DNA of 64,000 bases, from the NCBI RefSeq assembly GCF_003704095.1, contig NW_020847344.1:1-64000 (forward strand). Reading direction: 5' to 3'. This DNA is from Pocillopora damicornis. Taxonomy: Eukaryota. The notes below the pieces were generated by a model that saw nothing but the letters and a program-made list of their open reading frames with translations, was not told the DNA's origin and searched no databases. Every line of letters starts with the position of its first letter. Position 1 is the first letter of the stretch. The translations under genes and the position numbers were made by a program. Below, in pieces: positions 39,986 through 63,797 of this stretch.

Positions 39986-41814
39986 TATGGAAAATGTTTT
40001 TATTCTCACGTCATTTGCTAACAGCCCTCTAAAAATATTTACTTATTAAAAGCAACATAATGTAACAAGGAAACAAGAAATAATTCTCGAAATTGCAAAA
40101 TAAAGCCTGGAAACGTCCAGGCTTCGACGGGGCTCGACTCCGAGCCTTCACCTGGAGCACCCCTTAGTGTTTGACTCTCTGTCCTAGTTTCACCCTGAAT
40201 ATTTACATAATAAGGTGTGGAGCTTGCCAATCACACAGAGATTATGAGGAAATGCGAAAAAAAAAAAGCCACACAGATACGGCATTTGAAAAAATTGCGC
40301 AAATATACAATTTAAACTTTGTCGCTGACACAACAAAACGTTAACCTACATTGAAGTAATAAGTCATTAATAATTCATCTGTTACCCTGAAGGAACTGGT
40401 TATTATTATCGCCGTGGAAGGGGTCACGATAAAATTTTCATGATCCCTGTAAGGCTCTGTAATATTTTTGTCATCGCTCCATTAGCAATTAATCAGCAGT
40501 CAATTTTCTACTGATCCCCGTCAGCTACCCCTGANNNNNNNNNNNNNNNNNNNNNNNNNNNNNNNNNNNNNNNNNNNNNNNNNNNNNNNNNNNNNNNNNN
40601 NNNNNNNNNNNNNNNNNNNNNNNNNNNNNNNNNNTTGTCACTCCCTTTTTCCATGGTGCCGTTAAAATTATTCTTGTGTTGATAAATACAACTTGGCAAA
40701 CTAGAAACTTACACCATTTTCGAATGTCTATCATTCCTAAACCGGAAGTACTTCCGTTCTCGCTTCATTACCTTGACCCCAGTCCTCCCGGAACCGAGCG
40801 GTCAAACATTTTGCGAGTAAATAATCTAAGAAACAAAGTTAAGAAAAAAGGAAAGTACGGAAGCTGCTATCAAAATAACCAAAAAAGGGCCTTAATGTTC
40901 CTATGATGAGGAATATACATGCATCATGCGTCATCGCTGTGATAAGGGAAATGCATTTTTAAAGCCAATTTTTATCTTTTAAAAATATAAATTCCAAATA
41001 ATATTTATCAACATTACAAGGCCACATTAATACCCTTACTATTTATCAACATACATTCATCATGAAAACCAATCTATCCATTTACCTTTTATTGGTAAGT
41101 TTTTTTCGATGATTCAGGGATGAGTCTATAGTTATAGACTGCGAAGCACGTAAAAGGCACAGAGTGCATAATATCAAATACACGTCGTGTGTAACTAACT
41201 GTTTGACAGCCAATTGCTTTTCTCTTTTCGTTAGAGTTTAAAATGAAAGTGTCATAAACTTGACAAATGGATCTGTTTAATGACAAAGTGTTTGTCAAGC
41301 AAGGGATCGTACATGACTTTCCAGCTGGTTTCGAAAACGTGAAAAAGCTGTACCACGCTTCATTGTTAACTCACGATTTATTCACTTGATTTGATGATTT
41401 TACAACAACGCTTCGATTAACTCCCACTCACAACTCTCAGCTTATTCGAAAGAAACACACACAATGTCCCGCTGTAAGCACGTGCCAGAACAGTGCCATG
41501 TATGGGGCGATAAAACAGGTGCCGTATACATGTTGTTTGGTTATATATAGATTAACCGAAATCAAATCAAATTAAAGAATGCTTAACGTATCGTACAGTT
41601 TCCAACACTTAAGTTATTTTTTTGTATTTACAAATTTAAAGAATATAGGTTTTCCACTGTCCATCAGGCGCTCAAAGTTGTGCCGTTGCATCATTCCATC
41701 AAGCGCGTACTGCGTAGAATGGTAATGACGTCTTCTTGAGCCGCAGATTGAAGAGCATTCACATTTAGTTAATCTATTACATTTTAGTTATTAATCTCTA
41801 TACGCATCGTATAT

Positions 41815-42183
41815 TTAATTCTGCTCTTCAATTGTTTTTGGCTGACTTTCGCCTCCAATAGCCTCTTCATGAGGAGCCACGAGTGACTGAACTTTTCTCA
41901 GAAATTTTAGGAACGTCGGTAGCTTAGCAACGATCTGCTCTGGTTTCCAGTCTCCTTCATCAAAAGCGTCATCCCATTTTTTACAATACAGATGAATGTC
42001 CGTCTTTTTCACACAAAATCGAAAAAAAATAAATAAGAAAAAAATTAAAGCCCGTAAGACTTCCTTTGACTCAAAACAGATGACTAAAGGACTTAAAATG
42101 TGGGATAGTCAATCACTAACGAAACAATCAAGCTAACTGGTTTCAAAGCTGACGTTTTAGGCGTTGTCCTTTCGTCAGGGCTA

Positions 42184-42214
<31 letters not shown>

Positions 42215-45200
42215 GAAACTCTTAACGGTGGCCAATTAACGCTATCATCACAGTTGATGATGATACCAAATTGACTCTCTGAATGACTGATTGACGAATT
42301 GAGTGACTGACTGGCCAACTGGCTAACTAGCTTAATGTTTTGCTAGAGGAATGGCTAGTAGACTAGCTGGCGGACTGGCTAGCGGACTGACTGGCGGACT
42401 TGCTGGCGTATTGGCTGACTGATGAACTGATAGGGTTGACTAATTGACTGACTGACAAGCTGCCTGACGTATTGGTTGGCAGACCGTGATTGTCTGAGTA
42501 GCTGATTAACAGACTGACAGACTGACCGACTGACCAACTTTCAAATTAGCTGACCAGCGGACTGACTGGCCAAATCAGAGTTCTACAGTCGCTTTAATTT
42601 AGATATACTGAATGACTGTTCAGTATCAACTGCAGACGAGTGACATGGATCATAACACAAACAGCGGTGTATGACTAACATGGACGAAGAGAAAGCATAG
42701 CTTGATTGTAGTGATACGTACCCTTACTTCGGTTTCGTCCAAACTCCATACATCATTGTGATCAATATTTATGTCTTTAGCTTGCTCTTTACAAACAGTC
42801 AAGGCAAACTGTTCTTCATCCGTTGTTTCGTACTGGTATGTTCTTCTCCGACTGCGACGGCAGTAAAAAAGTTCAAATCCATCTGGAAGCTCGGAGGTTG
42901 GTGGTAACTTCAGTTTACTTTGATCAATCTTCATGTTCATCAAATAACTTTCAAGAATTCTGTCTTCTTCTTCAGCTTCTGGTGTCTGCGGAATATTTGG
43001 ATCTTGACAAAAATAAAAAGACATACTTTTAACTGAGACAATGTGATGTTTACAATGTGATACTTAGTTCCTTCCGTTATTTTTTTTCAGTGTTACTCTC
43101 CGTAAAAACTAGTCCCTTACACAGTCGAGCGTTTTTGACTTCATGATTTTTCTTCTGAGGTTCAGAAGAATAAATCATGGAGTCAAAAACGCTACTCAGT
43201 GCTGTAAGCTCCATTCATTAATTATTTTTTTGGTCGGTAAAACTGATGGCAAATATCATCCAATATTTCGCTCTTCTTTCTTTTTTTCTACCTTTTTAAA
43301 TGTCATTCGCAGTAAGTTTTCCATCCGCAATTAAAAAACTTATGAAATTAAAAGTTAATGCCGCTGAGAGCTGCGAGAAGCTGTTTATTACGTCTTTCTT
43401 GTCATAATTCACAGACTCACATGTTCTTATCGACAAACGGCAGTCAAATCCCTTGGAAGGCATCAAAATGTCTGCTATCATTCTTTGTTGAAAGTGAGAA
43501 TAAATATGGAAGCATGGTTCGTTCGATGTTCTTCTGGTCTCGTCTTCGGTTAACACACGAGTTAAGATGTTTTTAACAGGAATAGAAGCATTGCGAGAGA
43601 ACATTAGCGAAGGAGCTGTAGCACCCTCGTCCTCAGAATGTTCCTCCACCAGCCATGCCTGGCATAAAGAGAGAAACCAGAAAATTTGGGGAATTAAAAA
43701 CTAATTCCAATCAGTCTTTATTCAGGGAAGTAGACAGGCTTCTCTAAAAACAAGTGACAGTTTTTCCGGTGTCTTAGTTCCTCAGCGATGGGAGACTTAT
43801 TCCTTTAATTAAGAGGCTAGAATATAATTTAAGAGATTTTAACAACATACAGTTAACGTCCCTAATAAGGACAAACTGTCCGGATTCCTTAGAGACCATA
43901 TCGTTTTCACTGAACCTTGCAGATATAAACGAGAATACCCCTCTTCATTTCCTATTTGGCGATACTCGAATGTGTTTGATCAGAAGTAAAAATTCTTTTT
44001 TCCAGAAAGGACAATCCAAGTCCAGCGTCAGATGATGAAGAGAATCCTACGATATATATGGATGTTCTTATCTATTCTATTTACAGATTTAAAATACCTC
44101 AACACCAATATCTCGGCAAGAAGGAGTGTAGAATGCAAAGTCATATCTGATATCTTCAGTTGATGTGAAAGATTCAAGGTCCTTCTCAATTGCCTCAACT
44201 TCCATTCTCAAGACGCCTTCCTTGAAGATTGGCTTCCAGCTATTGCCATCCGCAGATTCAACTTTTTCTTGGATCTCCTTCAGGGTAAAAGTGTCTTCCT
44301 CTTCATCTGCAGCAACAGAAAAACCAAAGAAATAAAATCTTAGATTGACACCTCCACATTCCACTTTAATGCGAGTTACAGAACCAGGCGTTTTCGTTAA
44401 TCTTCTAATCCGATTTAAGATACTTCATCAGAGATTTTTCGATCAATTCATATGCTCCTTGTCCCTCTGCGGTGTTGTCCCCCCCTTTCCCCATTTCTCA
44501 CCTTCATCAATCTTAGTTATATAGGCGTGACCGAAACGACTCTTCATTTCTATCTTAACCTTGCCCCCTTCCACCTCCTCTTTGTGAATTTGTTTTAAAA
44601 CTCCACGGATCTTTTCTTTCAGACTTTCCGTGTTAGCAAAATCATCTGTTTCCTGTTAAGAAACAAGATGATTGTATTAATGTCTTTTGTAATAATTGTT
44701 GGATGTTGCTTGTTTTATTGCTTGGGAGGTTCATTTTTGTTTAGACGTTCTTGTCGATTCCCCTCAGTTTAAAAGTCGTTGTGTGCTATGACTTCATTAA
44801 AAAATCAAGCTTTCCGAAGTTATGAGCAAGCAATATGTCATTTCTCCAAATAAAAGAAACGACTTTAAACGAACGGCTGGGTCGACTTTCGGCGAGGAGG
44901 CTCGGAAGATTCCATCATAAGCCTGGTTTCTAGAAATGTCATGACAAAGGCGGGACAAAATGTGTTGAGAGCAAATACAGAAATGGAGAATTTCTGTAGT
45001 TATTGTCTTGTTCTAGGGCTATAGTTCTTTTTCATGTGGAGGTTTACAGCGAACACGTAGGAGGGCTTGCAACATGATAGGTCGAAACCTTCAGTTACCT
45101 ACTCATCGTATGAAATTAGTAATGTTTATATGTAGTGAATGATGTAGTCTAAACTGTGGCTAAAATTGAATGATTGATTTTCTAAGCAGTAACATTCACA

Positions 45201-47235
45201 ATATGTTTGTATGCATGGATCATTTTCTTTATTTAAGGTTAGCTTAGGGTTAGACAGTCGTTTTTTATACTAGATCAGCGAAAAGTCGGGCAGACCTTTC
45301 CTAGAGGATGTCCCAGTAGCTTTAGTTGGAAGGACTTATCTCCAGAGTCGGTGACTTGATCTGATTGTAGCTTCGAATTCTGCAGCTCAAACTCGTGGTT
45401 TTCTTTCAGCTGAGCAGTGTCCACGAAAACAAACCTTGCCGAAGGTTCAGTACTCTCTGAACGTTTCATTGCAAGATTCTTAAATGAAAAAAAAAATCGT
45501 TAATTGCTAATGGAGCATCACAACAGATCTACGTCCAATACTAAGAGCCTCTGGCTCGGAAGACTGTGCAAACACCTCCCACGTCTTCGACATTCAATAA
45601 AGCCACTGAATCCCTAATTTCCTATCGAGAGCCTTCTTGGGCTTACTCTCGTTTTTGGAAATCCCAGAGTGTGATGTCATGTCGCGAAGGTAACCCACGC
45701 TGAAATCCTCACTCGTTCTTCACCAAGACATTCAGGTAGCACGAGAGGTGAGCATACCTTAATTTTTAAGATAATTTGAAGAGGGATTACCGTTGTTACG
45801 AGGCCTTAAAATGTCTCTCTTAAAAGTGGGAGTCTCATTTGTATTCTAATACACTTATGTAAATTAGCCTACAGGGCCTTGACAGCACGTAGAAAACAAC
45901 GATAGAATTTTCTCCCCTAAGGGGAGGTTAAGATTATGTTCTGACCCTTTTTTTACTTGCGCACAAAAGACTGATAATTATGCCTGCAATTTTAAGAGAG
46001 GTCTTCCAGGTGGATTTGGATCCTTTGTCGTAAAACCAAAATTAACATAGTCGCAACAGCCAATCAGAAGAAAGAATGATGACACAGGGACACCAATACA
46101 CACTTACCACGATGGCCTTTATTTCTCTTATTGCTTTTTTTTCGCCCTCTCTTGGTCCTTTGAAGTACAGGCCAGGGCTGCTCCTGAAGGCTTTTAGAGT
46201 TACACCAGTCTTAGTTGAGATATTGTTCAACTTCTCATGTCCTTTCCCAATGACAACACCCATGAATTTGTCAGGTATGTCAACGTTGAGCTTCTTGAAC
46301 CCGCCTTTTTCGTTGTCTTGAGTACCCTACGGATCCGAACAAATATATAAACGTGTCTAGACTTGAAAAAAACCTAGGGAGAGAGAATACACGCAAGCTT
46401 TGAAGTTCTTGAGAATTTATATGTATAATTTGTGTAATAGTGATATTTGAATGTTGGGTAGCTGATGAAATTAAGGGAAGTTCAATGGTGGATCTGGAGA
46501 GTATAAAAGCAGCAGGCTGAGGAAAACTTGCCGTAAGATAGCCACCTCATTCATACCAATATTACATTTATATTAAATAAAAATACCTGCTTTCAAAGCA
46601 GTAAAAATCCAAGTGCCGAAAAAAGAGGGGCTCTGTGAGAATTTTACAGTCAAACCTCTCGACGTAGGTATCGATCTTTTTTTGTGGGTGATTTGCAACC
46701 CTCTTGGTTCTTTGATAAAAGTTTGTTTCTTAATTCGAAAACAAAAACATCCAATGTACAGTATCTAGAACAGTCAAGCGATTTGATAGTTCAATGGACA
46801 CTGAGTTAGATACAGACACTCGGCCTCCTTTCACCCACCAGCTCTTACCGTCACGATTTCTTTTATTATCTTTTCTGCATTTTCACATTGTTCTGCAGTG
46901 GAAAATTTGAGGAGTTACGTCTATATAAATAGTTCCACTTCCTTTAGTAGCCACTTACCAATTTCTCATTGATTAGGTCTCTTGCACGGGCCCTTTGCCT
47001 CTCATTACCACGAATAGCGAATCCGTTGCGACCTCTTTGTGACTGAGCACTGATCTTTGCCCCTGACGTTTCTTGTATTTGATTTATTGTACTTCCTTTC
47101 CTGCCGATTATGAAGCCAATGCGGTTTTCAGCTACTGGTAGAAATTCGTAGCCTTCCTCCTGAGTGCTCCTTTTAAGATCGTCATTTATATTTCTGTTCA
47201 GAACAGCCCTTATGGAAAAATGTTTTTATCCTCAT
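41815..47235 (-). CDS. KH-KH + putative TTM-like domain protein, chimeric paralog B' (A-type exon 1 + B-type exons 2-8); start codon defective in this assembly
   Basis: Exons ~47210-46959 (copy of A exon 1, GRKG KH), 46326-46108, 45478-45296, 44652-44502, 44306-44098, 43658-43421, 43002-42722, 42003-41815. All are open with intact splice sites. The A-type ATG reads AGG at 47208-47210, and the upstream ATG at 47235 is out of frame by one base. Confidence 0.7.
42139..42275. repeat. Penelope-terminus-derived inverted repeat with two degenerate hammerhead motifs back to back; paralogous copy at ~50588-50712
   Basis: gtttcaaagctgacgtt...ttcgtcag / ctaacgaagggctaacgcttgaaacgtcagctttgaaac forms a hairpin and matches the sequence at 39441-39530. 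Confidence 0.7.
42280..42570. repeat. Degenerate (GACT/GGCT)n simple repeat; paralogous copy at ~50715-50970
   Basis: Runs of gactgact/ctggct in intron 7 of B' and B. Confidence 0.75.
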
Positions 47236-48599: not shown

Positions 48600-50277
48600 A
48601 TTATCTAGACCCCAGTCCTCCCGCACAGAACGGTTAAACATTATGCGAGCAAATGATTTAAAAAGGAAAGTTAAGAAAAAGGAAAGTACAATGGCTGCTA
48701 CCAAAATAACAAAAAAGGGCCTAAATGTTCCCATGTTGAGGAATATACATGCATCGTGCGTCATCACCGAGATAAGGTAAATGCATTCCTAGAGCCAATT
48801 TTTGTCTTTCAGTATTTCAAATTCAAAGTAACATTTATCAACACTAACTGGCCACATTAATACCCACATTATCACCATACAGTCATCAAGGAAACCAATC
48901 TTTAGAGTATCCATTTACCTTTTAGTGGCGAGTTTTTTTTCGATGATTCAGTTCTGAATTTGTTCTCGAAGTTATAGCTTGCAAAGCGCGTAAAAGGCAC
49001 GGAGTGCATAATATCAAATACACGTAAGAACTCACTGTTTGACGGCCAATTATTTTTCTCTTTTCGCTAGGGTTTAAAATGAAAGTGTCATAAACTTGAC
49101 AAATGGATCGGTTTAATGATAAAGTGTTTTTTAAGCAAGGGATCGTACATGACTTTACTGCTGGTTCTTCAGTGTAATGTCCGTATTATTATCACCACTA
49201 AACTAATGGACGTATAAAGGAAAAACAATTATAACAACATGGACAATGAACAATACAATGTTGACTTAAAGTTTGAATAATTATTCTTGAATAAAACGAT
49301 GAAAGACACATCTGTGTGTACATTATGGTCACAGCCAATAGTTTTTCGCAAATGCGAAATGTGTAACAGGTACATTAATTAAAAAAAGAACTTGTAATTC
49401 TTGTAAGCAATTGATTTTAAATTGTACAAACGCTTCCAAAAAGATTGTTCTCATTTATATGAGGATTAATGACAAACTCTACTTTAAACTAAAATTATTA
49501 AAAATCAAACCCTGAAAGTTTTAGCACAACCCAGGTGTGGCCAGATGGGGATAAATTTTTTACAAAACTTCCAACAGCTTTTTTAATCAAGCAGTTTTAA
49601 TAAAAATCAAGTAACCCTGGATGAAAAGCTGCTCACGCGAAAAAAAAAAAAGCTGCTCACGCGAAAGTTGGTCGTAAGGAGCCGACAATACTTCTGATGT
49701 AGGTTTTTATCATATGCTGTTTTTTTGGTTTTTTGTTCTTTATGCTGTTCATTGTATTTAGTTTTCAACAGGGCCGTTATACAAACCACGTCAGGGTGGC
49801 ACACACCTTGTATAAACTCTTTCTCAAAACATCAAGCTTCGATGGTGCAATTAAATGCAGTTAAGATTTTCACATTCTAAAATAGGATGTGTACATTCAC
49901 TAAAATCAAATTAGAAACGGCGACGCAGGTACTACAGGAAAGATAAACAAAGTTTCTTTCTCAAGATCAGTCGTGTGACTAGATGACCTCTCTCATCACT
50001 GTAAATGCTCTCTCCTAAAAAAGCATAGCCTTTCTTGCTATTAATTTCAGTTATTTTTTTTGTATTTACAAATTTAAAGAAAATGAGTTTTCCACCGTCC
50101 ATCAGGCGCCCAAAGTTGCGCTGTTGCATCCTTGCACCAAGCGCGTGCTGCGCAGGATAGTAATGACGTCTTCTTAGTTAAGCCGTGGATTGAACAGCAT
50201 TCACATTAATCTATCACATTTTAGTTATTGATCTCTATGCGTATCATAGATTTAGTCCTGCTCTTCAGTTGCTTTTG

Positions 50278-53200
50278 CTAAAATTCGTCTCTAATAGCCT
50301 CTTCATGTGGGGCCACGTGTGACTGAACTTGTCTCAGAAATTTTAGGAACGTCGGTAGCTTGGCAACGATCTGCTCCGGTTCCCAGTCTCCTTCATCAAA
50401 AGCGTCATCCCATTCCTTACAATGCAGATGAATGTCCGTCTTTTTCATAAGAAATCGAAACAAAATTAAACAATAAGAAAAAAAACTAAAACCCGTAAGA
50501 CTTCTTTTGACTCAAAACAGATGACCAAAGAAATTAAAATGTAGGATAGTCAATCGCTAACGAAACAACTCACTTGACAGCTAACTGGTTTCAAAGCCGA
50601 CATTTAAGCTTAAGCCTTTCGTCAGGGCTAACGCTCGAAACGTCAGCTTTGAAACTCTTAACGGTGGACAATCAACATTATAAGCTTAGTTGATGATGAT
50701 ACCAAATTGACTGTCTGAATGACTGACTGACTGACTGAAAAACTGGCCGACTTGCTGAATGTTTTGCTGGCGGACTGGCTGGCGGAATGGTTGGCGGACT
50801 GGCAAGCGGACTGGCTTGCTGACTGAGTGATAAGGCTGACTAATTGACTAACTGACAAGCTGCCTGACTTATTGGCTGGCAGACCGTGATTATCTGAGTA
50901 GCTGATTAATAGACTGACTAACTGACCGACTGGCCAACCTTCGAATTAGCTGACCAGCGGACTGGCTGATGGGTTAACTGGAACAGCTACTGTTTCACAT
51001 CGTAGCGATACGTACCTTTACTTCTGTTTCGTCGAAGCTCCATACATCACTGTGATCAATATTTACGTCTTTAGCTTGGTCTTTACAAACAGTCAAAGAA
51101 AACTGTTCTCCATCCGTTGTTTTGCACTGGTATGTTCTTCTCAGACTGCGACGGTGGTAGAAAAGTTCAAATCCACCTGGAAGCTCGGAGCTTGGTGGTA
51201 ACTTCAGTTGCCCTTGATCAATCTTCATGTTAATCAAGTAACTTTCAAGAATTCTGTCTTCTTCTTCAGCTTCTGGTGTTTGCGGAATATTTGGACCTAA
51301 ACAAAAATACAAAGACACAGTTTTAACTGAGACAATGTGAGGTTTATTTATCATTATGCGACAATGTTAGACAGAAGCCTATACTTAGTTCTTCCCGTTA
51401 TTTTTTGACAATGTTACTCTCCGTGAAAACTAGTCCCTTACAGAGTCGAGCGTTTTTTCATGGAGTCAAAAACGCTACTCAGTGCTGTAAGCTGCTTTCA
51501 TCAATTATTTTTCGGTCGGTGAAACTAATGGCAAATATCATCCAATATTTCGCTCTTTTTGCTTTTATTCTTCCCTATTTAATGTCATTTGCGGTAAGTT
51601 TTCCATTCGCAATTAAAAAACTCATGAAATTAAAAGTTAATGCCGCTGAGAGCTGTGAGAAGCTGTTTATTACGTCTTTTTTGTCATACTTCACAGACTC
51701 ACATGTTCTAATCGACAAACGGCAGTCAAATCCCTTGGAAGGTATCATGATGTCTGCTCTCATTCTTTGTTGAAACTGAGAGCACATATGAAAGCATGGT
51801 TCGTTCGATGTACTTCCGCTCTGGTCTTCGGATGACACACGAGTCAAGACGTTTTTGACAGGAATAGGAGCACTGCGAGAGAACATAAGCGAAGGAGCTG
51901 TAGCACCCTCGTCCTCAGAATGTTCCTCCACCAGCCATGCCTGGAATAAAGAGAGAAGAAACAAAATTTGGTGAATTGAAAACTAATCCAATCAGTCTTT
52001 ATTTAGGGAAGTACACAGGCTTCTCTAAAACAAGTGACAGTTTTTCGGTGTCTCAGTTCCTCAGCTACGGGAGACTTATTCCTTTAATTAAGAGGCTAGA
52101 ATATAACTTAAGAGATTTTAACAACATATATTTCACGTCCCTAAAAANNNNNNNNNNNNNNNNNNNNNNNNNNNNNNNNNNNNNNNNNNNNNNNNNNNNN
52201 NNNNNNNNNNNNNNNNNNNNNNNNNNNNNNNNNNNNNNNNNNNNNNNTAATGATGAATAGAATCCTACGATATAAATGGACGTTCTTTTCTACTCTATTT
52301 ACAAATTTAAAATACCTTAACACGAATATCTCGGCAAGAAGGAGTGTAGAATGTGAAGTCATATCTGATATCTTCAGTTGCTGAGAAAGATTCAAGGCCC
52401 CTCTCAATTGCCTCAACTTCTATTCTCAAGACGCCTTCCTTGAAGATCGGCTTCCAACTCTTACCATCCGTAGATTCAACTCTTTCTTTGATCTCCTTCA
52501 GAGTAAAAGTGTCTTTCTCTTCATCTGCAGCAACAGAAAAACAAAAGAAATAAAATCCTAGTTTAACACCTCCACATTCAACTTTAACGTGAATAACAGA
52601 ACCAGGCGTTTTCGTTAATTTTCGAATACGATTGATGATACTTCCTAAAAAATTTTTCGTTCAACTGATACGCTTCTTGTTCCTCTACAGTGTCTCCCCT
52701 CCCCCTCTTTCCCCATTTCTCACCTTCATCAATCTTGGTTATATAGGCGTGGCCGAAATGACTCCACATGTCTATCTTAACCATACCCTCTTCCTCCTTC
52801 TCTTTGTGAATTTGCCATAAAACTCTGCGGATCTTTTCTTTCAGACTTTCCGTGTCAGCAAAATCATCTGTTTCCTGTTAAGAAACAAGATGATGGTGAA
52901 GTCTTTTGTAATAATTGTTGGTTGTTGCTTGTTTTATTGCTTGGGAGGTTCATTTTGTTTAGACTTTGTAGTCGATTCCCATCAGTTTAAAAGTCGTTGT
53001 ACGTTAAGACGTCATTGAAAAATCAAACTTTCCGAAGTTATAAGCATGCAATATGTCATTTTTCCAAATAAAAGAAACGAATTTAAATGGAAAGGGTGGA
53101 TCGACTTTCGGCGAGTAGGATCACAAAATTTCATCATAAGCCTGGTTTCTAGAAATGTTTTGACAAAGGCGAGACAAAATGTGATGAGAGCAAGTACGTA

Positions 53201-55522
53201 CAGAAATAGAGAATTTCTGTAGTTGACGTCTTGTTCTAGGGCTGTAGTTCTTTTTTATATTGGGGTTTAGAGCGAACACGTAGGAGGGCGAACTTACAAT
53301 ATGATAGGTCGAAACCTTCAGTTACCTACTTATAGTGTGAAATTAGTAACGTTTATATGTAGTAGATGGTGTAGTTTAAACTGTGTTGGTGAGATTGAAT
53401 GATTAATGTTCTAAGCAGTAACATTCACCATATGTCTGCATATATGGATCATATTCTTTATTTAAGGTTCGCTTGGGGTTAGACCGTCGTTTTTTAAACA
53501 AGATCAGCGAAAAATCGGGCAGACCTTTCCTAGAGGATGTTCCAGTAGCTTCAGTTTGAAGTAATTATTTCCAGAGCCAGTGACTTGATCTGATTGTAAC
53601 TTCTGCAACTCAAACTCGTGGTTTTCTTCCATCTGAGCTGTGTCCATGTAAACAAACCTTGCTGGAGGTTCAACGTTCTGTGAACGTTTCATAGCAAGAT
53701 TCTTAAATGAAAAGAAAACCGTTACTTGTCAATGGTGCATCACAACAGACTTACGTCCAATACCAACAAAGCCGTCAGGACACTGAATCCCTAATTTCCT
53801 AACAAGGGCCTTTTTGAGCTCGCTTTCGTTTTTGGAGATCCCAGAGGAAGGTGTGATGTCATGTCGCAAAGGCAACCCACGCTGAAATCCTCATTCGTTC
53901 TTCACCAAGACATTCAAATAGCACGAGAGGTGAGCATACCTTAAGTTTCAAGATAATTTGAAGTGGGGTTACCTTAATTACGAGGCCTAAAGATGTCTTT
54001 CATAAAGGGGTGGTTTCATTTGTAGTCTATTACAATTTATGTAAATTAGCCTTCATGGCCTTGACAACATGTGGAAAACATCGACAAAATTTTTTTCTCT
54101 AGGGGGAGTTTAAGAGTATGTTCTGACCCCTATTTTCACTTGCGCACAAAAGATTGATAATTATGCCTGTCACTATAAAAGAGGTCTTCTGGGTGCATTT
54201 GGATTCTGTGTCGTAAAACTGAAACTAACATAATCACAACAGCCAATCAGAAGAAAGAATGATGACACAGGGGGACCAATACACACTCACCACAATGGCC
54301 TTTATTTGTCGTATCGCTTTTTTTTCGTCCTCTCTTGATCCTTTGAAGTACAGGCCAGGGCTGCCCCTGAAGGCTTTTAGAGTTACGCCAGTCCTAGTTG
54401 AGATATTGTTCAACTTCTCATACCCTTTTCCGATGACGACGCCCATGAATTTGTCAGGTATGTCAACGTGGAGTTTCTTAAACCCGCCTTTTTCGCTGTC
54501 TTGAGCACCCTGCAGATCAAAACAAAGACATAACCGTATTTAGACTTAAAAAGAAATCTTAGGAGAGAATACACACAAACTTTGAAATTCTTGAGAATTC
54601 ATACATATAACATATGTAATCTGTGATATTTGAATGGTGGGTAGCTAATGAATACATACATACATACTTTATGAACGTGGTTGACACTTAGCTATATAAA
54701 GCTAGTTTACAGGTCAGTCACGAAAGAAAAGATGAATTACTAAACCTTGAAGCTATATAAAAGTGTAAAATGACGTAGTATTATGGAACTGCATAAAATT
54801 ATAGAACTATTAAACGTATGAAAACTAGGTTAAATGGCGAATAAGGTCAAGATCTATAAACCTACAACCATATTAAAGTGCTTAAAATAATATATTTAAG
54901 CAAATAAGGGAATGAAATTAAATATGAAATTGAGGGAAGTTCAAAGGCGGATCAAGAGAGTTAGCAGCAGGCTGAGGAAAACTTGCGGTAAGATGGCCAC
55001 CTCATTCCATACCAATATTACATTTATATCTAATCAAAACACCCACTTTCAAAGCAGTAAAAATCTAAATACCGTAAAAAGAGTGGCTCTATTAGAGTTT
55101 TACAGTCAAACCTCTCGACGTAGATATCGATATTTTCTGTGAGGGATTTACTACCCTCTTATTTCTTTGATTTAATTTTGCTTTTTAATATAGAAACAAA
55201 AGCATCCAGTGTACAGTATCTAGAACAGGCAGGCGATTTGATGGATCAATTGACACTGAGTTAGATACAGACACTCAGCTTCCTTTTCCCACTAATGAGC
55301 TCTTACCGTCACGATTTCCTTTATTATCTTTTCCGCATTTTGACATTGTTCTGCCGTGCCTCTCACGAGCGCTTGATTTTCTTTATTAATTGATAGCTGG
55401 ACTCCGGTTTGCTCTCTGATTTCTCTTATTCTTGATCCTTTCCTTCCTATGACAAGTCCAACTTTGTCTTTGGGGATTGGAATCACCCTTGTCACGACTG
55501 TGCGTCCTTGTGTATTCGACAT
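50278..55522 (-). CDS. KH-KH + putative TTM-like domain protein, paralog B, 8 coding exons, 550 aa
   Basis: Exons 55522-55307 (KH1, VGLVIGRKGSRIREIREQTGV), 54509-54291 (KH2), 53701-53525, 52874-52724, 52524-52316, 51940-51703, 51296-51016, 50439-50278. Continuous ORF with GT-AG introns. Confidence 0.88.
54650..54910 (-). mobile_element. Copy-specific insertion with a (CATA)n end, probable 5'-truncated LINE tail
   Basis: Absent from the paralogous intron at ~46465 and begins with atacatacatacatactttat. Confidence 0.4.
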
Positions 55523-56211
55523 CCTGACAGGAGAGATAAAAACCTGCTTCGAGGTTACTAGTATTATTATCGTAGGTGGGTCAAGAAGAAAATTTTTCCT
55601 TTTACCTTTGTCTTAAAAAATCTTGGTTGGTCAAATTTGCATAGCTTCATTCCCAGATAAACGCTATTAATTATTTCGGGTTTCACTTCCAGGTATTTCC
55701 TAAAATAGCTTTGCGTGACGCGACTAAATCGGGGAAGTTTGAGGTCACACTAAATTTTAATTTTTCGTCCACAAGCTCTGTTCTTGTCAAATGCGATATG
55801 CTACGCACGGTGGAAGCCATACTTCTTTCCAGTGAAATGTAAACGGTCATTTTGTCCCTACATCAATCAGTTCCCTTGTTCGCTGAGCATTTAAGATCGT
55901 ATCTTGGAATAGACGAAGCAACACGACATATACTTCAATACTTGCATGTCAAGTCTTTCGCCCTTTATATATGTCCATTTTCAGGCTATTCTACCCTTCA
56001 ATACCTAGTCCTATCATATAGAAATAGATGGTTCTGTACAATGACGCACTAAAACAGTGAAGTTAGGCTTAAGGATACGACTGAGTAAAGAATTTCACGC
56101 GGATTTGTACTCACCATACCTGTGTTTACAGTAGTAGGCAACTTCTGTTCCCCTCTCTACCCTGGTGATTAAAAAGTTGTGGTCGTTTTACAAAATGGCG
56201 GCAGTTTGGAT
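55523..56211. promoter_or_regulatory. Putative bidirectional promoter and 5'UTR exons shared by KH paralog B and ZNFX1
   Basis: Divergent genes. Minus-strand donor near 55605 and acceptor just before the ATG at 55522. GGAAGTGAAAC (Ets-IRF composite-like) at 55680-55690 on the minus strand. YY1-like AAAATGGCGG at 56192-56201, followed by a donor at 56212. Confidence 0.55.
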
Positions 56212-56665
56212 GTATGTGCTTGCACCATACACCTTGGTTTTTAACGACTTGGGGCCTTGGTTCAGTACGCTATGGCGATATTTTTCGAGAGAAACAACTG
56301 CGTTTTCCATGAAACCTCTACTGACTGATATTGGGTCTCGACCTTCTCAGAAAATGACCTCTGGTGTTCGTTGGATTCTTGGAAAGATCACATAGGGTAG
56401 TGACGTCATTTCATCCAAGGGAGAGAGGGACAGTAGACTGTGACATTAGCCATGTTTTGGCATTGGCAAAATGTGCTACTTACATTTCAGTCGCCAGGAA
56501 GAAGCTTAGCCTTTTATTTTCAGGAAATGACACTAATTTTTCATTCATAACGGCTATGAGAGACAACAAATATATTATGAATACTCTGGAAGTGACCCAC
56601 CCCATCCAGAAGTATTCTTGAACATGCATAATTTAAATCTTTTAGAATGAGGAGGATAATTTTCA

Positions 56666-59600
56666 ATGATGGCTACCGAAAAAGATGGAGATATTGATAG
56701 TTTATTGTGTAGAATATGTCCAGATATTGATGTTTTTGAACGCAAGAAGTTTAAGGATAAACTTGTGGAATATCTAACTCATGTGTCAGTACCAGCTGGC
56801 TGGGAAACTTGTGGATACAGACTGTCCAAGGAGCACCCCACATACAAATACCACAAAAGGCTGCTGGAAAATTTCATTGATAAGCAGAAATTAGAAGATG
56901 AAAAGCAGAAATCAGTGAGTTCAACAGTAACAAAAACAAAACCAGAAGTGTTTTTTGAACAACTCAAACAGTTTGTCAAGGTAGAAGAACAGAATGACAG
57001 TTTTTCTGAGTTTTGTGAGTCAAGAAGGTCAGCCCTACTAGATTTGTTTGAAAAAAATGTAAAGCTTTGTGGTGTTGTGATACGGAAATGTACATACAAT
57101 GCAGGCCATTGTAAGGTGTCTGTGCTAATAGAAGTACATCATAAAGCTCAAAATGGTCATTCAGCATTGATTGAACATCTCATTGATGTTGAAAACGAAT
57201 CTCTAAGAGGATATGATCTCAAAGTTGGGGACATTGTTGAAGTAACACAATGCCGGAGAAAGGAAGGAGTCGCAATGGAACCAGAAGTGATAAAGTAAGT
57301 ATAGTTCATATAAGTTATAAATTTCAGTCTTCCATGGTATCTTGTAACAACTTGTTAGAGATTGATCTCTGCACCTACAACAATATTACATTACTCTAAT
57401 CACATTTCAACCTAAAAGTATATGAAATGAATCACTGTGCAATAAGCAGGAAAGATCACTTCAAGAAGTGTCGTCAGTTTATCCAGGGAAGGGAAGGACA
57501 GTAGACTGTGACACTAGCCATGTTTTGGCTTTCTTCTCTTTGAGATAAAAAATCAGCAATTGCATTGGGGTGTAAATAAACAAGGAGTCTTCCATGTAAG
57601 TGTAACATTAACCCACAGGCTCACTAATTATCCTATAATTCCTCAGCATATGGATTGGAATAAGAATTGCCAGAAACTTTCTTTTTTTACTCTGCAAATG
57701 AGAACTAGATGGTTTTGACTTTCAAAATCATTATGGTTTTTATCAAGCACAGCTTTCAGATGCCATGTGTTAAAAGTGATGTGGAAAATGGTATATGTTA
57801 ATTAATTTCCACTTTTCAAACAATCTCTTTCCCGTCTTTTTTCCAGGTGTTACCATCGTGATCAGACTGAGATTGAGTCATTTTTGATTTTTTTGGTAGC
57901 AAGTGAAAGCTCAACTGCTGCATTGACTGAACTTGTAAGGTAGGTTTTATACCAGTTGCATGTAACTTAATTAACTGAATAGTCTTGTCATATTGGTTGG
58001 ATGTTGTGGCTTTTATTGCCAACTTTCCTTAGAACTTTTTGTTTTAACCAGAAGTGACTAACAAATAACTTTTCCCCATAATATCCATACATTATCCAGC
58101 TAATAATGTCATGATTACACATCTGATTGGCTGAAAACAAGTGCATTCTCTCATAATACAAGTGCAAAGTTGTAACATGTGTGCAAATTTACATCTGATT
58201 TGACTCTCTGCAATGTTTTGTCATGTACATTATTGACAAGTAACAAAATGATTTCTCATGCAATTTGGTGTAGTAAGCACAAGTTTGTAAATTTTTAGAA
58301 AGACTACAAATTGCACTTGCCCTATGGGTTTTGATATTAATTTTGTTGTCTTTGAAAAATTTAAAATTGCACTCAAAATCATGTTATTTACTTATAGAAA
58401 CAGGCCATGAGAATAGTCTCAAACTAACAATTAGATCTTGGGAGTTAACTGAAGAGTTAGGCAAGAATCACAAGTTCTTAATTTAAATTTGTTGAGGAAC
58501 TTTATAGCAATTTTCTGACATGACTTACTGATTTTGTGCTGTGCCATTTTTAGATGTACTGCATTATGGGAATACATCCTGGAACTTCCCAAAGAAGACT
58601 ATACAACACCAATGGCTATGCAAATTTTATCCATTGTAGACAAGATTTGCTCCAGTGCCCAGAAAAATATGTCACCCACAGTCACTCATCTTGTGAAAAA
58701 GTTTCAGGGGAGTGCTTTCTTCAAATCAGTCTTTCCAGATTTTGTCAATAAGATTGAAAATGGGAGGTAAGTAAAATGATTGAAAATTGTACTACTTTTT
58801 ATTCTTTTATTCATTTCAATCCAGGAGTGACCAAGCATGAACTTCTCCTAACAATTTCCATATACTATCATGAAGAAAGGTGATGAGAAGTAAAAAATGA
58901 TGAACTAGAGGGATGACAGCTGTTTGATTAATCACCAATTCAAAGAACTTAAAAATGATAAGTGATGAATTATAAACAATGTAGAAAATTATTATTTAGA
59001 TCTCAAGAGTGATAGGGTGATTATTAATTGTTACTAATTTATTAGCTTCTGGTGTTTTTTGGTGTTTTTTTTTTACATATGAAATTTTTTGGTGGTTGTT
59101 GCTGCCAGACATTTTGTTATATGTTAACATATTATTCTTGCCAGCTTATGCTGATGATGAGTTCTCAGCCTTCTCTGACAAAGAGCTGGTGGTGGGGTTA
59201 GGAAGGGGAGGGGAGGTGGTTGAGTTGGGTTGCTCCCTTTTTTTCTTGATCTTTGTTTAAAAATGTGATTTAATTTTACTTAATATAACTGACAGTGAAT
59301 TTAATTCAAGTATTGTATGTTTCCTTCACAATCAGTTGTCAATTGTCAAATTTCAGCTTGGTTCAGCGGATTCTGGAATGTGTAGTCACTGCCTCTCCAG
59401 CTGCTGGCCCACATGTTTTACGAATGGCTAAAGAGCTTGTGTATAAGTTAATAGACAACTCCAGTGACTTAGAGACAGCCAAAGAGAATGGACGAGCAGC
59501 TATAGATTACCTAACTAAGCTATCATCCATTATTGCCTTAGAGGTGCCTCAAGGCCGTGAAGAAGTTCAGGCTTTGCAATGGAAAGATCTTCCCTTGATA

Positions 59601-62600
59601 CCAGTTGTGAAAGAGATCCATGAACCCAGTAACAGTTAATTGAATTTATTTTATTTATTATTGGGCAATCTGTACATTTACAATGTGTTATTGTTAACTG
59701 TTTAATATAAGCTAATGAAATAGAACACCTCTCATAGAATCAGAGTTTGATTAAGAAATGTATCAGCAGGAGAATATTCTCCAAGTCTGAGTACTTAGAA
59801 AATAGCTCAGGGGTAGAATTTTACATAGTGACAGAAGAGAAGAAACTCTCTTATTGACTTTCAATCCTAAAATTGTCCATTGCACAGCCATGTTTGTAGC
59901 TCTGAATAAAGAGCTAAGACATAGCGACAAGGTCAACCTACTGAGTTGTGATAGACACAAGGCTAGTTGGCAATTGGTGATAGAGTTTGTGAACAGCTGT
60001 AGAGTGGAGTATTAGGGGAATTTCACTCCCAAGATCTCATTAGTAATTCTCTTTACTGTCTGCTATAAAATTCATGTGAAGTTAGTGTGGAGAATTTACT
60101 GGTGGATCAAATGATAATCCCCTAATTTATATTTTTCTTTATTCTCATCACAAATGCTATTTAATATTGTCAGATAAGGAAAAATTATGTCTTGGTCACT
60201 TATGGGAGGCAAAGGGTTAAGAATATTTATGAAAGCTGGCAATGGCTTTGTTGATGGTGTTGTGTTACAAATGCTTATGTAGTCTTTATATTTAGGATTG
60301 AAGACAAAGGACTTACCAAAGATAAAAAAGGAGGGACCATACAAATCAGAGGAGGAATACTTAAATACATACTTCAGACTTCTCAGAGAGGAATGCTTCC
60401 ATAAGTTACGCGAAGGAATCTATGATTTTGTTAAAAATGGATGTCAAAGCAGTTCAAAAGATATTACGATGTACAGGTATAAACAAATTGCTGTTTTACT
60501 CTCACATAGGATGATATTTAGGCTGGTTTGGCACTTTCTGTTATTATCAGGAGTATGTGAACAGGTTGTGAATACTGATATATGTACCTTATAATTCTGC
60601 TGATCTCATCTCATCCTCCTAGAAGAAACAAATATTACAATACTTAATAATATTGTAAGTTATAAATGCTTTCCAAGGGTAATTTATGGATAATGTTATT
60701 ATCATAGTTACTGCAGTCTCTTAGAGTACATGACATACACTGGTAAGTACACAAAACTTGCATGCTTGTCTAGTATTGTTTTCAATGTGTGTAATCAATT
60801 TGATATCCTCAGAGTTTTCCTGAGAGCAGTCTCCCTTCATAATGAATATTCTCCAACTATGATGTTACTTTCACTGCTGTACAAGAAATCAGAGTCATCT
60901 AAAAATAGTGATGAACAGCTTGAGTAAGTACATGTATCAAAGAGTTATCTTGTTGTTCTTTTGATATGTAACTCAACCAGCCTTTAGTAGTTTATTTATG
61001 AAGTCCATCCTGGTACAAATATCCTTTGAGACCCAAAGCTTAACTTAACTGTTTAATATACTAAATCGCTGACCACACTTAACTTTCTCATGGAAACAAG
61101 CAGCTTAGCTGACATAAAGTTTTGGAGACTCATGTGACATGTTAAGACATAATACTTTGGAAGCCATGGAAAAATGGCAAATTTTATTAAAGAAAAGGAC
61201 AGAACTTGAGTAATTTTATATAAAACTGTTAATTATTTTCAAATTAACTTAAACCTATGAAAAGAAGTAGTTGCCATGGGGACCAAAACAGTTGCAGCTT
61301 GGAGCACTGTACTAAGTTCATAATATGGTTTATTTTTGGATCACTTGTTTTTTAGGGGATTCCTCTTATTTTAGCATGACATTATAATTATAACTTAGTT
61401 AGTACATTATGTTATTGTATCTTTGCCAGTCAAGATTTCCTCCTGTATGGAGATCTGCTGTGTATTTCCCTGGATGGCTCTTTTAAAAAACCGATCTGGG
61501 GTCTGGTGGAAGGTCATATTTATGACCAGAGGTAATTAGTTTAATCAACTTTAAGTCTAAATTCGAAATGGTGAATCAAAAATACATTAATGTTAAAATT
61601 CTTCCAATCTCACCAAATTTTATTGAAATTGGAAGAATTTTAATGGCAGCGAATACAATCATGTATGTCAGGCCTTAGATGTATCGAATATTAATAGTTC
61701 TGCATCTCTAGGCTTTTGTACTCAATATAATCAATGTTGTTATTTCTACAATTTTCATGGGTTACTCTCCCACACTGATGATTCTGATTGTAATTTACGT
61801 AACCCAACTTTCAAATTGCCACATTTAACTTAGATTTAGAAGTCTGGAATTGCATACCAATCAGTCTAAAACAGGCTCCCTCCATAAGTTATTTCAAGTA
61901 TGCTCTAAGAAACAAGTACCAAATTCAAATGTTCAACAACTTATCAATTCTAAAGGAAGCCTCCATAATCTTGAATAAAAACTAATATTTCATTTATTAT
62001 GATAACTATTAATTCATATATTTTAATTTAAACTAAAAGTTTTAATTTAAGGAATACTGTTGTATGTTAAAGTATATACACAAAGGTCCACATCGGTTCT
62101 GCTGCTTTCAATTTTTAACCAACATGTACTGTAAATAAAGTTGATTTATATTGTTCTTTGAATCCAGCATTGTTAGGATTACTCTTTGTGACAAAGCAAA
62201 TGACCTTTCAGAAGCAGAGTTTATTACACAGTTGCAAGAGGTTACAAACAAAAGTAAGTTTGTGGGCTGTTATTTAAACTTTGCTAAGGGAATAAAACAT
62301 TTAGTTATACAATTATAGCTTTTATATTTTCTTATGAATTGTTCTGTGATGTCACATTTATTTTGGTTCTTTTGAGAAATCTGGACTCTAGAGATTTTGA
62401 GTGCAAATTGCTTAAGTTCTGATGGATCTAAGTGAGCATCAAAGTAGCAAGAATTACCAGATGCTATCATGAGTAGCTGTACATGTATTTCACAGTTTTT
62501 AATTTATTATAGGAATGTAACTTGTGAACTTGAGGTTGGGAATCTTTCTTGGATAGATTCAGACTCATTGGGACAATGGAGAGCACATTGTTCAATGAGC

Positions 62601-63797
62601 TGAAGCAGGGGATGAGTAGGCCATGCAGGTCAAATGGTTAATATTTCATTGAAGCCTTTTATTGATCTCCAGATGATGGAGCATACATGGCACAGAGCCA
62701 CACATTCTATCAGGCATTTGCTTCAGCCATGGAAGTTCTGCAGCACAAAGGTTAGCCAATGGTGTCGATTTGAATGAAATAAGGAAAATTTTACATTTGG
62801 ATTTTTTACGTAGCCATCCATCACAGGGTTGGTACAAAGTCCCATTTAAATAATCATGCAGATCCATTTTCTTAGATAGCTTGATAGTTTTGATGATAAG
62901 AGTGCTGTATATGGTTTTGCAGGGCACTCATAGGTCATCCTGGTCAGACATGAATTTTTTTGTGTTTTATTGTCTAAGCATATATTTTTATGTAATTGAT
63001 TTTTCTGTGAAGGAAGAACTATATATGATTCCCAGAAAAATAGCTATTACATAATTAAATGGTTCTCACATTTTTTTTATTTCTAAGAGATGACTGGCCA
63101 AGAAACACTTCATTAAAACTTCTTCACTAGTCTTCCTATCATCAGCGCAAGATCTTAATTTGGATTAAAATGGACAATGCAGCAATGCTTTACACACATT
63201 GTTCACTTTCATTAAAGTTCCTAACATGCTCTTTACACCACATTCAAATGTCACAATTGGCCATCTTATTGTTGAGGAACAAGAATTTGATAGTCAGTCA
63301 TAAACACAAGGAGTGATGAAGTACATATATTTGTTTTCCCATTTTTTCTTTAGATCATGTTCCATTTAAAGAATTCTTGGTTTACCCAAAACCAAACTAC
63401 TTTGAGCCAGTTGAATACCTAACTGACATTAAAAGTCCCCCAGATTGGGAGATAATCTTTCATAAGGAGTCTCTGAAAGGTCAGGAAAAACAGTCTCCTT
63501 ACTCACCTCTAAAAGATCTCGAGGGAATGCGGGTAAACAGCAACTTCAAATCCAAACTTGATCGAACACAGCTTGCAGCAGTGGAACTGGCACTAAAAAA
63601 CAAGCTTGTGCTGATTCAGGTAATGCTTTAACTTGTATCCGCCCAATATCCACATAGAATTATTTGGTCATATGTAAAATTTTTGCTATTCCTTTCTTCC
63701 ACAGGGTCCTCCGGGAACTGGAAAGTCATTTGTGGGTGTGGCCATAGTGCGCCTTCTTTTGTCCATGAAGGTGCCACAAAGCCATGGACCTATTCTG
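56666..63797 (+). CDS. ZNFX1: ZNFX1-like (NFX1-type zinc finger-containing 1) SF1/UPF1-like RNA helicase, 5' part only; continues beyond the window
   Basis: Exons 56666-57294, 57847-57939, 58554-58766, 59357-59628, 60296-60476, 60813-60923, 61430-61531, 62168-62253, 62673-62750, 63354-63619, 63705-63797 join in frame. ZNFX1-type blocks GPYKSEEEYLNTYFRLLREE, LLYGDLLCIS and VPFKEFLV, the Q-motif LDRTQ and Walker A LIQGPPGTGKS are present. Probably one of several paralogs rather than a strict ortholog. Confidence 0.88.
60020..60219. mobile_element. Diverged TTAA-MITE copy (ZNFX1 intron)
   Basis: actcccaagatc...gtcttggtcacttatgggaggcaaagggttaa matches the 4790-5000 family. Confidence 0.65.

Follow-up and report, generated by a model that had tools for sequence, protein, structure and literature searches.

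The stretch analysed here, hereafter the window, is the first 64 kb of the 700-kb contig C3979 of the Pocillopora damicornis assembly (234 Mb, 4,393 contigs). Towards its end two genes stand head to head: on the minus strand KH-TTM paralog B (KH-TTM B), whose family joins KH domains to a barrel of the triphosphate tunnel metalloenzyme (TTM) type, and on the plus strand a large helicase gene. We found that the two form a conserved, co-duplicated, divergent pair, in which a KH-KH-TTM protein with an arginine-lined, glutamate-poor tunnel stands beside a ZNFX1-type motor without zinc fingers. We hypothesize that the genes may be co-regulated, possibly via STAT, that the KH-TTM protein would bind 5'-triphosphate RNA and would act as partner of the helicase, and that the pair may serve defence. 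Taken whole, the reading of the locus as a conserved divergent coral unit, with a KH-TTM 5'-triphosphate reader and a ZNFX1-type helicase engaged in RNA surveillance or defence, is the explanation that we favour, tentatively and as quite possible rather than probable. An earlier note on this DNA had proposed an RNA-defence module from the same arrangement; what it observed is confirmed in part, and its interpretation is supported in part.

Two transcription units that abut or overlap

The start codons diverge about 1.1 kb apart, as the earlier note had it: the ATG of KH-TTM B is at 55522 on the minus strand and that of the helicase at 56666 on the plus strand, with 1,143 bp between them. The genes of the window bear introns, and its GC content is about 38%. 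Logan contigs from four RNA-seq runs, each of a different study, were mapped to 53450-59440; neither strand, exact starts nor expression levels are readable from such contigs. Both genes were spliced and present in all four runs. For the KH gene, the canonical joints 53701>54291 and 54508>55306 (minus strand) were found in every run, and a third joint, 55541>56118 (CT..AC on the plus strand), in three of the four (X2, X8 and X10, from three studies). The latter delimits a 576-bp GT..AG intron (55542-56117) in the 5' untranslated region (5'UTR), with a non-coding exon upstream that extends from 56118 to at least 56258. For the helicase, the contigs contained the plus-strand GT..AG joints 57294>57847, 57937>58552 and 58764>59355, and those over exon 1 reached back to 56229/56280; in run X8 they start near 56650, and 56450-56649 is contig-free. 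The KH-gene intron at 53850-54249 served as a silent internal control, and since its depth was zero in all four runs, DNA carry-over is negligible. The exons that face each other are:

56118-56258, minus strand: non-coding 5' exon of KH-TTM B, upstream end approximate (joint 55541>56118 in runs X2, X8 and X10)
55306-55541, minus strand: exon E1 of KH-TTM B, with start codon 55522 and the first KH domain (RNA joints; Pfam KH_1, E 3e-16)
56280-57294, plus strand: helicase exon 1, start codon 56666, 5' end approximate (RNA contigs 56229/56280-56831; joint 57294>57847; orthologous exon in Porites and Desmophyllum, 42-53% identity; AlphaFold2 (AF2) and Foldseek)

Since the KH 5' exon reaches at least 56258 and helicase contigs begin at 56229/56280, the 5' exons are not separated by the ~600 bp that had been claimed for them; the two transcription units abut or overlap, by a few hundred bases at most. 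Judged from the RNA contigs, the divergent starts thus lie less than 1 kb apart, the geometry of a bidirectional promoter. The proposed co-regulation of KH-TTM B and the helicase rests on this geometry and on motifs, because the contigs give no strand, starts or levels. A literature search for the gene identifiers and for ZNFX1 in cnidarians found no expression data on these genes.

The linkage is conserved in stony corals and was duplicated as a unit

The earlier note had counted absence of the head-to-head linkage from related species against its proposal; within Scleractinia, this condition does not refute it. The linkage is kept in Porites and Desmophyllum and absent at a three-gene array in Nematostella. 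In Porites lobata, a B-type KH-TTM gene stands head to head with a gene for a 1,753-aa AAA_11/AAA_12 protein. Desmophyllum pertusum has its B-type KH-TTM gene head to head with a 2,064-aa AAA_11/AAA_12 gene, followed by a C-type KH-TTM gene, so that the gene order is that of the window. Helicase exons 1-5 have collinear orthologues in both species (42-69% identity, tblastn), and in a tree built from exon E7 every helicase-adjacent KH-TTM gene falls in the B-type clade. The linkage is therefore conserved in two other scleractinian families, and it is not universal in Hexacorallia.

Within Pocillopora, a tandem segmental duplication has copied 50003-74904 to 78009-106986 (~85% identity, ~25-28 kb). 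The duplicated unit includes the KH-TTM gene, the helicase gene and the intergenic region between them. For the duplicates of the two genes, synonymous divergence (dS) is 0.18 and 0.20, and the ratio of nonsynonymous to synonymous divergence (dN/dS), summed from per-exon counts, is 0.38 and 0.43. At least 16 ZNFX1-like and about 11 KH-TTM loci were counted in the genome, and C3979 is the one contig with both.

Adjacency and co-duplication could also be passive. A compact bidirectional promoter is hard to split, and it could have kept the two genes together without joint function, each in its own RNA pathway. In this respect, bidirectional promoters with YY1-like and CRE (cAMP response element) motifs are generally known to be common for unrelated genes, and both motifs are present here; Nematostella retains KH-TTM genes without the helicase; and the other KH-TTM loci (C1395, C374, C1005 and C2178) and 14 other ZNFX1-like loci lie on different contigs. 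We nevertheless consider passive synteny somewhat unlikely, given the complementary domain logic of the pair (a 5'-end reader beside a 5'-to-3' helicase, with RNA-binding modules on both), the purifying selection on both duplicates of both genes, and an adjacency that has outlived the Complexa/Robusta split, the deepest in Scleractinia.

Outside the window, between the two duplicated units, C3979:75582-75833 holds a fragment of KH-TTM exon E7 with an in-frame TGA, probably a pseudogene relic.

KH-TTM B is intact and belongs to a hexacoral family

The genes of the window were searched exon by exon, and the full-length alignment and the fold were obtained from database orthologues. A search of 1.84 billion representatives with profile A1, built from exon E7 of four paralogous copies, yielded 93 proteins. 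All named KH-TTM matches are from hexacorals (Nematostella, Actinia, Acropora, Montipora, Porites, Stylophora, Pocillopora and Desmophyllum), the closest being from Pocillopora meandrina and other stony corals. The query was restricted to a region of the alignment, since KH words dominated a query with its full length, which gave only 5 matches. Five long profile matches with multiple stretches (P0049, P0051, P0054, P0081 and P0069) were rejected as TTM fusions, as they are repeat proteins. The remaining features of the gene are:

54291-54508, minus strand: exon E2, second KH domain (joints in 4/4 runs; Pfam KH_1, E 3e-4)
53524-53701, minus strand: exon E3 (RNA contigs 53524-53701 in 4/4 runs; joint 53701>54291)
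52719-52904, minus strand: exon E4, first tunnel strand D-M-W-S-H-F-G, boundaries approximate (open reading frame (ORF); residues 204-264 of the Desmophyllum orthologue P0156, 63% identity)
52317-52552, minus strand: exon E5, IRYDF strand, 5' boundary approximate (donor AAG|GTATTT; P0156 residues 254-336, 58%)
52148-52247, no strand: assembly gap (N) in the E5/E6 intron (both flanks collinear with two paralogous copies)
51692-51940, minus strand: exon E6, DCRLSIR strand, 3' boundary approximate (acceptor CCAG|GCATGG; P0156 residues 332-415, 67%)
50999-51296, minus strand: exon E7, tunnel strands with RRxxRR (splice context AG|GT.. / ..AT|GTGAAA; profile A1; P0156 residues 413-507, 67%)
50278-50442, minus strand: exon E8, last coding exon (...TDIHLHC..WEP..), stop codon 50278-50280 (ORF; tblastn to P0156 residues 504-553, 62%)

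We considered whether the gap disrupts the gene or whether paralog B is a pseudogene, and rejected both. The gap is intronic: E5 ends at the donor AAG|GTATTT (~52317), and E6 begins with base 51940, at the acceptor CCAG|GCATGG. The spliced frame reads ...RVK|AWLVEE..., with zero residues missing relative to RVKAWIMEE in the Acropora orthologue P0009, and P0156 is collinear over the eight paralog B exons, unbroken, at 58-67% identity (tblastn). Paralog B is therefore intact and the gap is harmless.

KH-TTM B is a KH_1 protein: E1 scores 59.3 bits (gathering cut-off 21.5), E2 alone scores 20.7 bits, and the orthologues carry two to three KH_1 stretches. Beyond the KH domains, the C-terminal ~330 aa had no match in searches of Pfam, PDB sequences or NCBI names, and the Pfam families mRNA_triPase and CYTH did not match the KH-TTM proteins; Pfam holds no model for a Cet1/RESC-type tunnel joined to KH domains.

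As a separate observation, three tandem KH-TTM genes lie in Nematostella OW051988.1 at 3.88-3.93 Mb, each with three KH domains.

The predicted barrel resembles RNA triphosphatases and their inactive relatives

The fold was modelled with AF2 on the Acropora cervicornis orthologue P0009, covering KH2 and the entire C-terminal domain, from an alignment of 30 sequences. The model has a predicted local distance difference test score (pLDDT) of 72, mostly 80-90 in the barrel blocks, and a predicted template modelling score of 0.63. Foldseek against the PDB placed RESC1/RESC2 first (E 3e-9 to 1e-7), followed by Schizosaccharomyces pombe Pct1 (E 1e-6) and yeast Cet1 (E 2e-4), with the mimivirus capping triphosphatase and CYTH/TTM proteins at lower ranks; in the viral library it found giant-virus mRNA 5'-phosphatases (E 2e-6 and weaker). 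With VIA-align, Z was 15.6 for RESC1-RESC2, 15.1 for yeast Cet1 (4.0 A over 233 residues), 14.5 for Pct1 and 14.1 for Trypanosoma cruzi Cet1 (3.0 A over 180/185). Taken together, the comparisons with RESC1/2, the mimivirus enzyme, Pct1 and the Cet1 of yeast and T. cruzi gave Z 11-15.6 and a Foldseek probability of 1.0, as for a closed TTM barrel. The name KH-TTM-like, given by the earlier note, is thus upheld at the level of a model: the C-terminal ~330 aa are predicted to adopt the Cet1/RESC-type TTM fold. The exons of paralog B in the window are collinear with the family.

Six arginines (R216, R230, R306, R310, R361 and R365) are near-invariant among the 30 sequences and lie on or beside predicted tunnel strands, giving a basic tunnel lining; strand periodicity and conservation, rather than coordinates, suggest that they face inward. 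In the family, the first strand reads D-x-W-x-H-F-G and the last D-I-H-L-H, and the six arginines and both motifs are kept in paralog B. The catalytic glutamate pairs (ExE) are absent from the family and from paralog B alike, where D-M-W-x-H-F-G stands on the first strand and T-D-I-H-L-H on the last; the residue register to Cet1 was inferred from strand order, not from superposition.

In Cet1 the metal ligands are E305, E307 and E496, and mutation of any one of them abolishes activity (PMC10201420). RESC1/2, which lack two of the three ligands, are considered inactive, and RESC2 binds the 5'-triphosphate of guide RNA non-catalytically through lysines and arginines of its tunnel (PMC10201420). 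Since the ExE motifs read D-x-W and D-x-H in the coral protein, in parallel to RESC2, we suggest by analogy that the coral barrel is more likely a 5'-triphosphate reader of this kind than a Mn-dependent hydrolase.

Alternatively, the barrel could hydrolyse RNA 5'-triphosphates at an Asp/His metal site of non-canonical type and so mark RNA for 5'-3' decay or blunt its sensing, as DUSP11 does in mammals, with the helicase feeding it substrates. Its fold is that of Cet1-type enzymes, and the near-invariant D148, D218, D304, D407, H152 and H409 could bind metal. We hold this to be very unlikely: the strands read D-x-W and D-x-H, not E-x-E, single mutants of Cet1 E305, E307 or E496 are dead, and RESC1/2, without two of these three, are considered inactive (PMC10201420).

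Another alternative is a role in housekeeping RNA biogenesis, in which KH-TTM proteins would handle 5' ends in organelles or the nucleus, like RESC1/2 or fungal SLS1, with the helicase as remodelling partner. The best structural matches, RESC1/RESC2, are indeed mitochondrial RNA-editing factors; sub-threshold Pfam matches to SLS1_C (E 0.04-0.07, in Nematostella) and KH_SLS1_1 (in others) point the same way, and both genes are in every RNA run examined, with no known challenge. However, there is no N-terminal presequence, the protein beginning directly with its KH domain; GAS-like pairs occur at the coral promoter and at the Nematostella genes (see below); and a family restricted to Hexacorallia, with lineage-specific tandem expansions and moderate dN/dS, would be unusual for core machinery. 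Such a role is, in our view, unlikely.

The SLS1_C traces lie at residues ~434-513 of Nematostella P0108 and P0109, and those of KH_SLS1_1 in others including P0156. SLS1_C is the C-terminal beta-barrel of fungal mitochondrial SLS1, where it also follows KH domains, and these traces could reflect a remote kinship of the whole KH-plus-barrel architecture.

The helicase has a ZNFX1-type motor without NFX1 fingers

Beyond exon 1, the following helicase exons lie in the window:

57847-57937, plus strand: exon 2 (GT..AG joints 57294>57847 and 57937>58552)
58552-58764, plus strand: exon 3 (joints 57937>58552 and 58764>59355; tblastn 46-65% identity)
59355-59636, plus strand: exon 4, 3' boundary approximate (joint 58764>59355; tblastn 51-69% identity)
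60283-60480, plus strand: exon 5, boundaries approximate (tblastn 55-68%; PDB 9q9z_A residues 446-481, E 0.007; residues 260-294 of the paralog on contig C901)
63678-63803, plus strand: Walker-A exon, GPPGTGKS (ORF; AAA_11, E 0.002)

The gene extends past the window to ~C3979:74254, and its downstream exons encode AAA_11/AAA_12. The earlier note named it ZNFX1, and for the motor the name fits: the protein has an Upf1-like core of helicase superfamily 1 (SF1; AAA_11 plus AAA_12) that is closest to ZNFX1. Two of its exons matched ZNFX1 (9q9z_A) best in the PDB (E 1e-23 and 3e-15), with aquarius as the next family (E 2e-8 and 1e-7), and identity to ZNFX1 is ~69% over the motif VI block. Exon 5 adds weak similarity to ZNFX1 just N-terminal of the ZNFX1 domain.

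The name does not extend to the domains around the motor. The NFX1 finger core C-x(1-6)-H-x-C-x3-C is missing (0 matches) from the plus-strand frames of both 56-78 kb and the duplicate, whereas the C901 paralog has 15; this pattern with its positive control replaced a genome scan with Pfam zf-NF-X1, which was silent even in controls and hence uninformative. The Pfam ZNFX1 domain (PF25396) has 12 matches in the genome, none of them on C3979 at E <= 0.01; a trace at 61380-61532 (E 0.23) is possibly a diverged remnant. The canonical C901 paralog, which is intronless, has the ZNFX1 domain (E 1e-29) besides its 15 finger cores, and the homology of the helicase to it ends at C901 residue 1179, the end of the motor (tblastn). 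The last exon of the helicase encodes 371 codons of acidic, proline-rich sequence, open in the duplicate as well (dN/dS 0.45), a tail that is disordered.

The 210 aa encoded by exon 1 are specific to the lineage. They were modelled, with low confidence (pLDDT 67), as helices and, after these, a barrel resembling the oligonucleotide/oligosaccharide-binding (OB) fold, for which Foldseek gave weak matches to S17, SSB and PriB. The coding part of this exon (56666-57294) may thus form an extra nucleic-acid-binding module that canonical ZNFX1 lacks.

In helicase intron 2, at 58100-58400, non-canonical joints and loose RNA-contig ends pile up, which looks like a dispersed repeat transcribed elsewhere. 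ZNFX1 is strongly expanded in this genome: C901:120114-188169 carries a tandem row of five ZNFX1 genes that seem to have no introns, their open frames spanning ~2,500 aa, with ZNFX1 domain and NFX1 fingers, and further ZNFX1-like loci are on C2, C2278 and C3754.

The shared 5' region carries conserved motifs

The following motifs were found between the two start codons (gamma-activated site, GAS):

55680-55690, minus strand: IRF-like motif GGAAGTGAAAC, inside the 5'UTR intron of the KH gene, not conserved
56192-56201, plus strand: YY1-like element AAAATGGCGG, two occurrences in 124 kb, one per duplicated promoter
56305-56384, no strand: three GAS/STAT-like palindromes TTCNNNGAA, at 56305, 56344 and 56376, the last two being the conserved pair
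56402-56409, no strand: CRE palindrome TGACGTCA, kept in the duplicate, with two copies in the Desmophyllum intergenic region at a position that is not aligned

The IRF-type motif to which the earlier note had drawn attention is present, but it does not lie between the transcription starts. Its core AANNGAAA occurs 2 times in the interval, where 2.7 are expected from the window's own density; the duplicate (85% identical) reads GGAAATGAAAC at this position, with one substitution; and neither the Porites nor the Desmophyllum intergenic region has the exact 11-mer. The motif's intronic position, its non-conservation and its background density rule it out as a shared regulatory element.

Other elements are conserved. 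A sequence like the YY1-like element, AA[AG]ATGGCG, occurs in the same orientation in the intergenic regions of Porites and Desmophyllum. The pair of GAS-like sites, which like all such sites here are consensus matches and not evidence of binding, keeps its distance from the helicase ATG: -322/-290 in copy 1, -324/-292 in copy 2 and -326/-295 in Porites, with flanks that align. In Desmophyllum, the first site of the pair is kept in an aligned block. GAS-like sites occur at a background density of 0.68 per kb, and in 124 kb there are just two 100-bp stretches with three of them. In Nematostella, KH-TTM genes 2 and 3 have the GAS-like sequences TTCNGGGAA and TTCCCGGAA at -137 and -40 of the annotated start. 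There is no GAS pair within 3 kb upstream of a canonical ZNFX1 gene on C901, so this module is not common to all ZNFX1 paralogs.

Because the short shared 5' region holds both a conserved YY1-like element and the GAS-like pair, the two genes are most likely driven together. At the level of motifs, the conserved pair also supports a putative inducible promoter of the STAT type.

A model for RNA surveillance and its precedents

Our model suggests that both genes would be driven jointly from the short shared 5' region. The KH domains would hold single-stranded RNA while the arginine-lined tunnel captures its 5'-triphosphate end, and the 5'-to-3' helicase would then act on the same RNA from that end. 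The helicase, which has lost the NFX1 zinc-finger array, bears an N-terminal helical and OB-like module of its own and an acidic disordered tail. As uncapped, triphosphate-ended RNA is a hallmark of viral or other non-self RNA, the likeliest biological role would be RNA surveillance or defence.

Several points weigh against this model. The helicase is without the zinc fingers and the ZNFX1 domain of the proteins that have a documented antiviral role. YY1-like and CRE elements are typical of housekeeping bidirectional promoters, and the putative co-regulation is read from geometry and motifs. The Nematostella array, three tandem KH-TTM genes between TMEM219 and MARVEL genes, has no helicase neighbour, so KH-TTM proteins can exist unlinked; the comparison of linkage covers Porites, Desmophyllum and this one array. 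Finally, the protein that was modelled is an orthologue (it shares ~53% identity with the Desmophyllum orthologue, the closer one) and not that of the window, and the deduced facing of the arginines, described above, counts here as well.

The closest precedent is RESC1-RESC2 of trypanosome mitochondrial RNA editing, with its helicase KREH2. Besides being the best structural match of the coral barrel, it is likewise of the TTM type with most metal-binding glutamates lost, and it is a non-catalytic reader of 5'-triphosphates (PMC10201420) to which an RNA helicase binds directly (PMC13692030). RESC1/2-KREH2 is a precedent for a degenerate triphosphatase fold that acts with a helicase at an RNA 5' end. 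The differences are considerable: there is no detectable sequence similarity, RESC is a domain-swapped, mitochondrial dimer without KH domains, and its partner is a DEAH/RHA helicase of superfamily 2 (SF2), whereas the coral partner belongs to SF1. Binding of triphosphate RNA is shown for RESC2 and proposed here for coral KH-TTM.

With Cet1/Pct1-type RNA triphosphatases of fungi, protists and giant viruses, the coral barrel shares the tunnel fold (Z 14-15, root-mean-square deviation 3.0-4.0 A over 180-233 residues) and the arginine-rich interior. In contrast, it has D-x-W-x-H and D-x-H-x-H in place of the glutamate pairs of motifs a and c, two KH domains are joined to it and the host is an animal; animals cap with a triphosphatase of the cysteine-phosphatase type. 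The coral helicase has the SF1 AAA_11/AAA_12 motor of ZNFX1, the dsRNA-sensing antiviral helicase of vertebrates, and of Caenorhabditis elegans ZNFX-1, and differs from them in its missing NFX1 fingers and Pfam ZNFX1 domain, its unrelated N-terminal exon and its acidic tail.

ASCC1 also joins a KH domain to a fold that processes RNA ends (a 2H phosphoesterase) and works with a large RNA helicase, ASCC3, and the KH domain of Alvinella ASCC1 (8tuk) was among the structural matches of the P0009 model. There, the catalytic fold is 2H instead of TTM and the ASCC3 helicase is of SF2; the ASCC1 and ASCC3 genes are not known to be adjacent. As for the promoter, immune pairs of the TAP1-PSMB9 type share a bidirectional, IRF/STAT-responsive promoter. 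The coral pair resembles TAP1-PSMB9 in its divergent genes and its short shared region with STAT-type sites, whereas inducibility is documented for TAP1-PSMB9 alone and the coral region also has the housekeeping-type YY1-like and CRE elements.

Both folds are already known, as is the idea of a TTM-type 5'-end reader working with a helicase. Within a limited literature search, no publication joining a triphosphate tunnel metalloenzyme and a KH domain was found, nor any prior description; within that search, what is new is that animals have the KH-TTM architecture, that it is confined to hexacorals and that its pairing with a finger-less ZNFX1-type helicase is conserved. Elsewhere, tunnels of the Cet1 type are characteristic of fungi, protists and giant viruses rather than of animals, and the coral barrel may be the second case in nature of a degenerate capping-enzyme fold that has been turned into a reader of RNA ends. 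To our knowledge, cnidarians lack interferon yet have kept many vertebrate-type antiviral genes, and the KH-TTM/helicase pair bears on how they might recognize foreign RNA beyond RIG-I-like receptors. The conserved back-to-back linkage, the co-duplication and the pair of STAT-like sites make it a candidate 5'-end-based RNA surveillance unit of reef-building corals.

A bolder version of this proposal would make KH-TTM proteins hexacoral-specific cytosolic sensors of 5'-triphosphates that load the finger-less ZNFX1-type helicase onto non-self RNA, in a STAT-switched, interferon-independent antiviral module found across stony corals. We regard it as quite unlikely in this form. If true, KH-TTM proteins would be functional analogues of RIG-I or IFIT, derived from a capping-enzyme-type tunnel thought to be missing in animals.

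Other KH-TTM copies and further features of the window

Two more members of the family lie beyond paralog B on the same strand:

41609-46900, minus strand: paralog A, a partial duplicate of KH-TTM B (blastn 82-86% identity to 50046-55358; ORFs)
34666-40042, minus strand: diverged C-type KH-TTM paralog (ORFs; KH_1 matches; tree)

In the paralog A region (41609-47235) the B-like part stops at ~46900. Paralog A looks chimeric, because its KH1 exon (46947-47225) is similar to that of the C-type paralog (first KH exon, 39722-40042).

A dispersed repeat of ~200 bp occurs in both orientations at 60021-60223, 4797-5003, 5402-5607 and 32596-32802, and at C3979:72907-73111, with an inverted pair at 4.8-5.6 kb. 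The window closes with ~90 bases of another element, of which the genome has dozens of copies. On the plus strand, exon-like ORFs at 4165-6427 contain the motifs ..TYNILAD.. and ..CLQEVD.., which by eye are typical of deadenylases or 2',5'-phosphodiesterases of the endonuclease/exonuclease/phosphatase family. Also on the plus strand, 18908-21149 and 27675-28226 hold long open frames rich in Ser, Thr and Pro, mucin-like, with a transmembrane-like stretch at the end.

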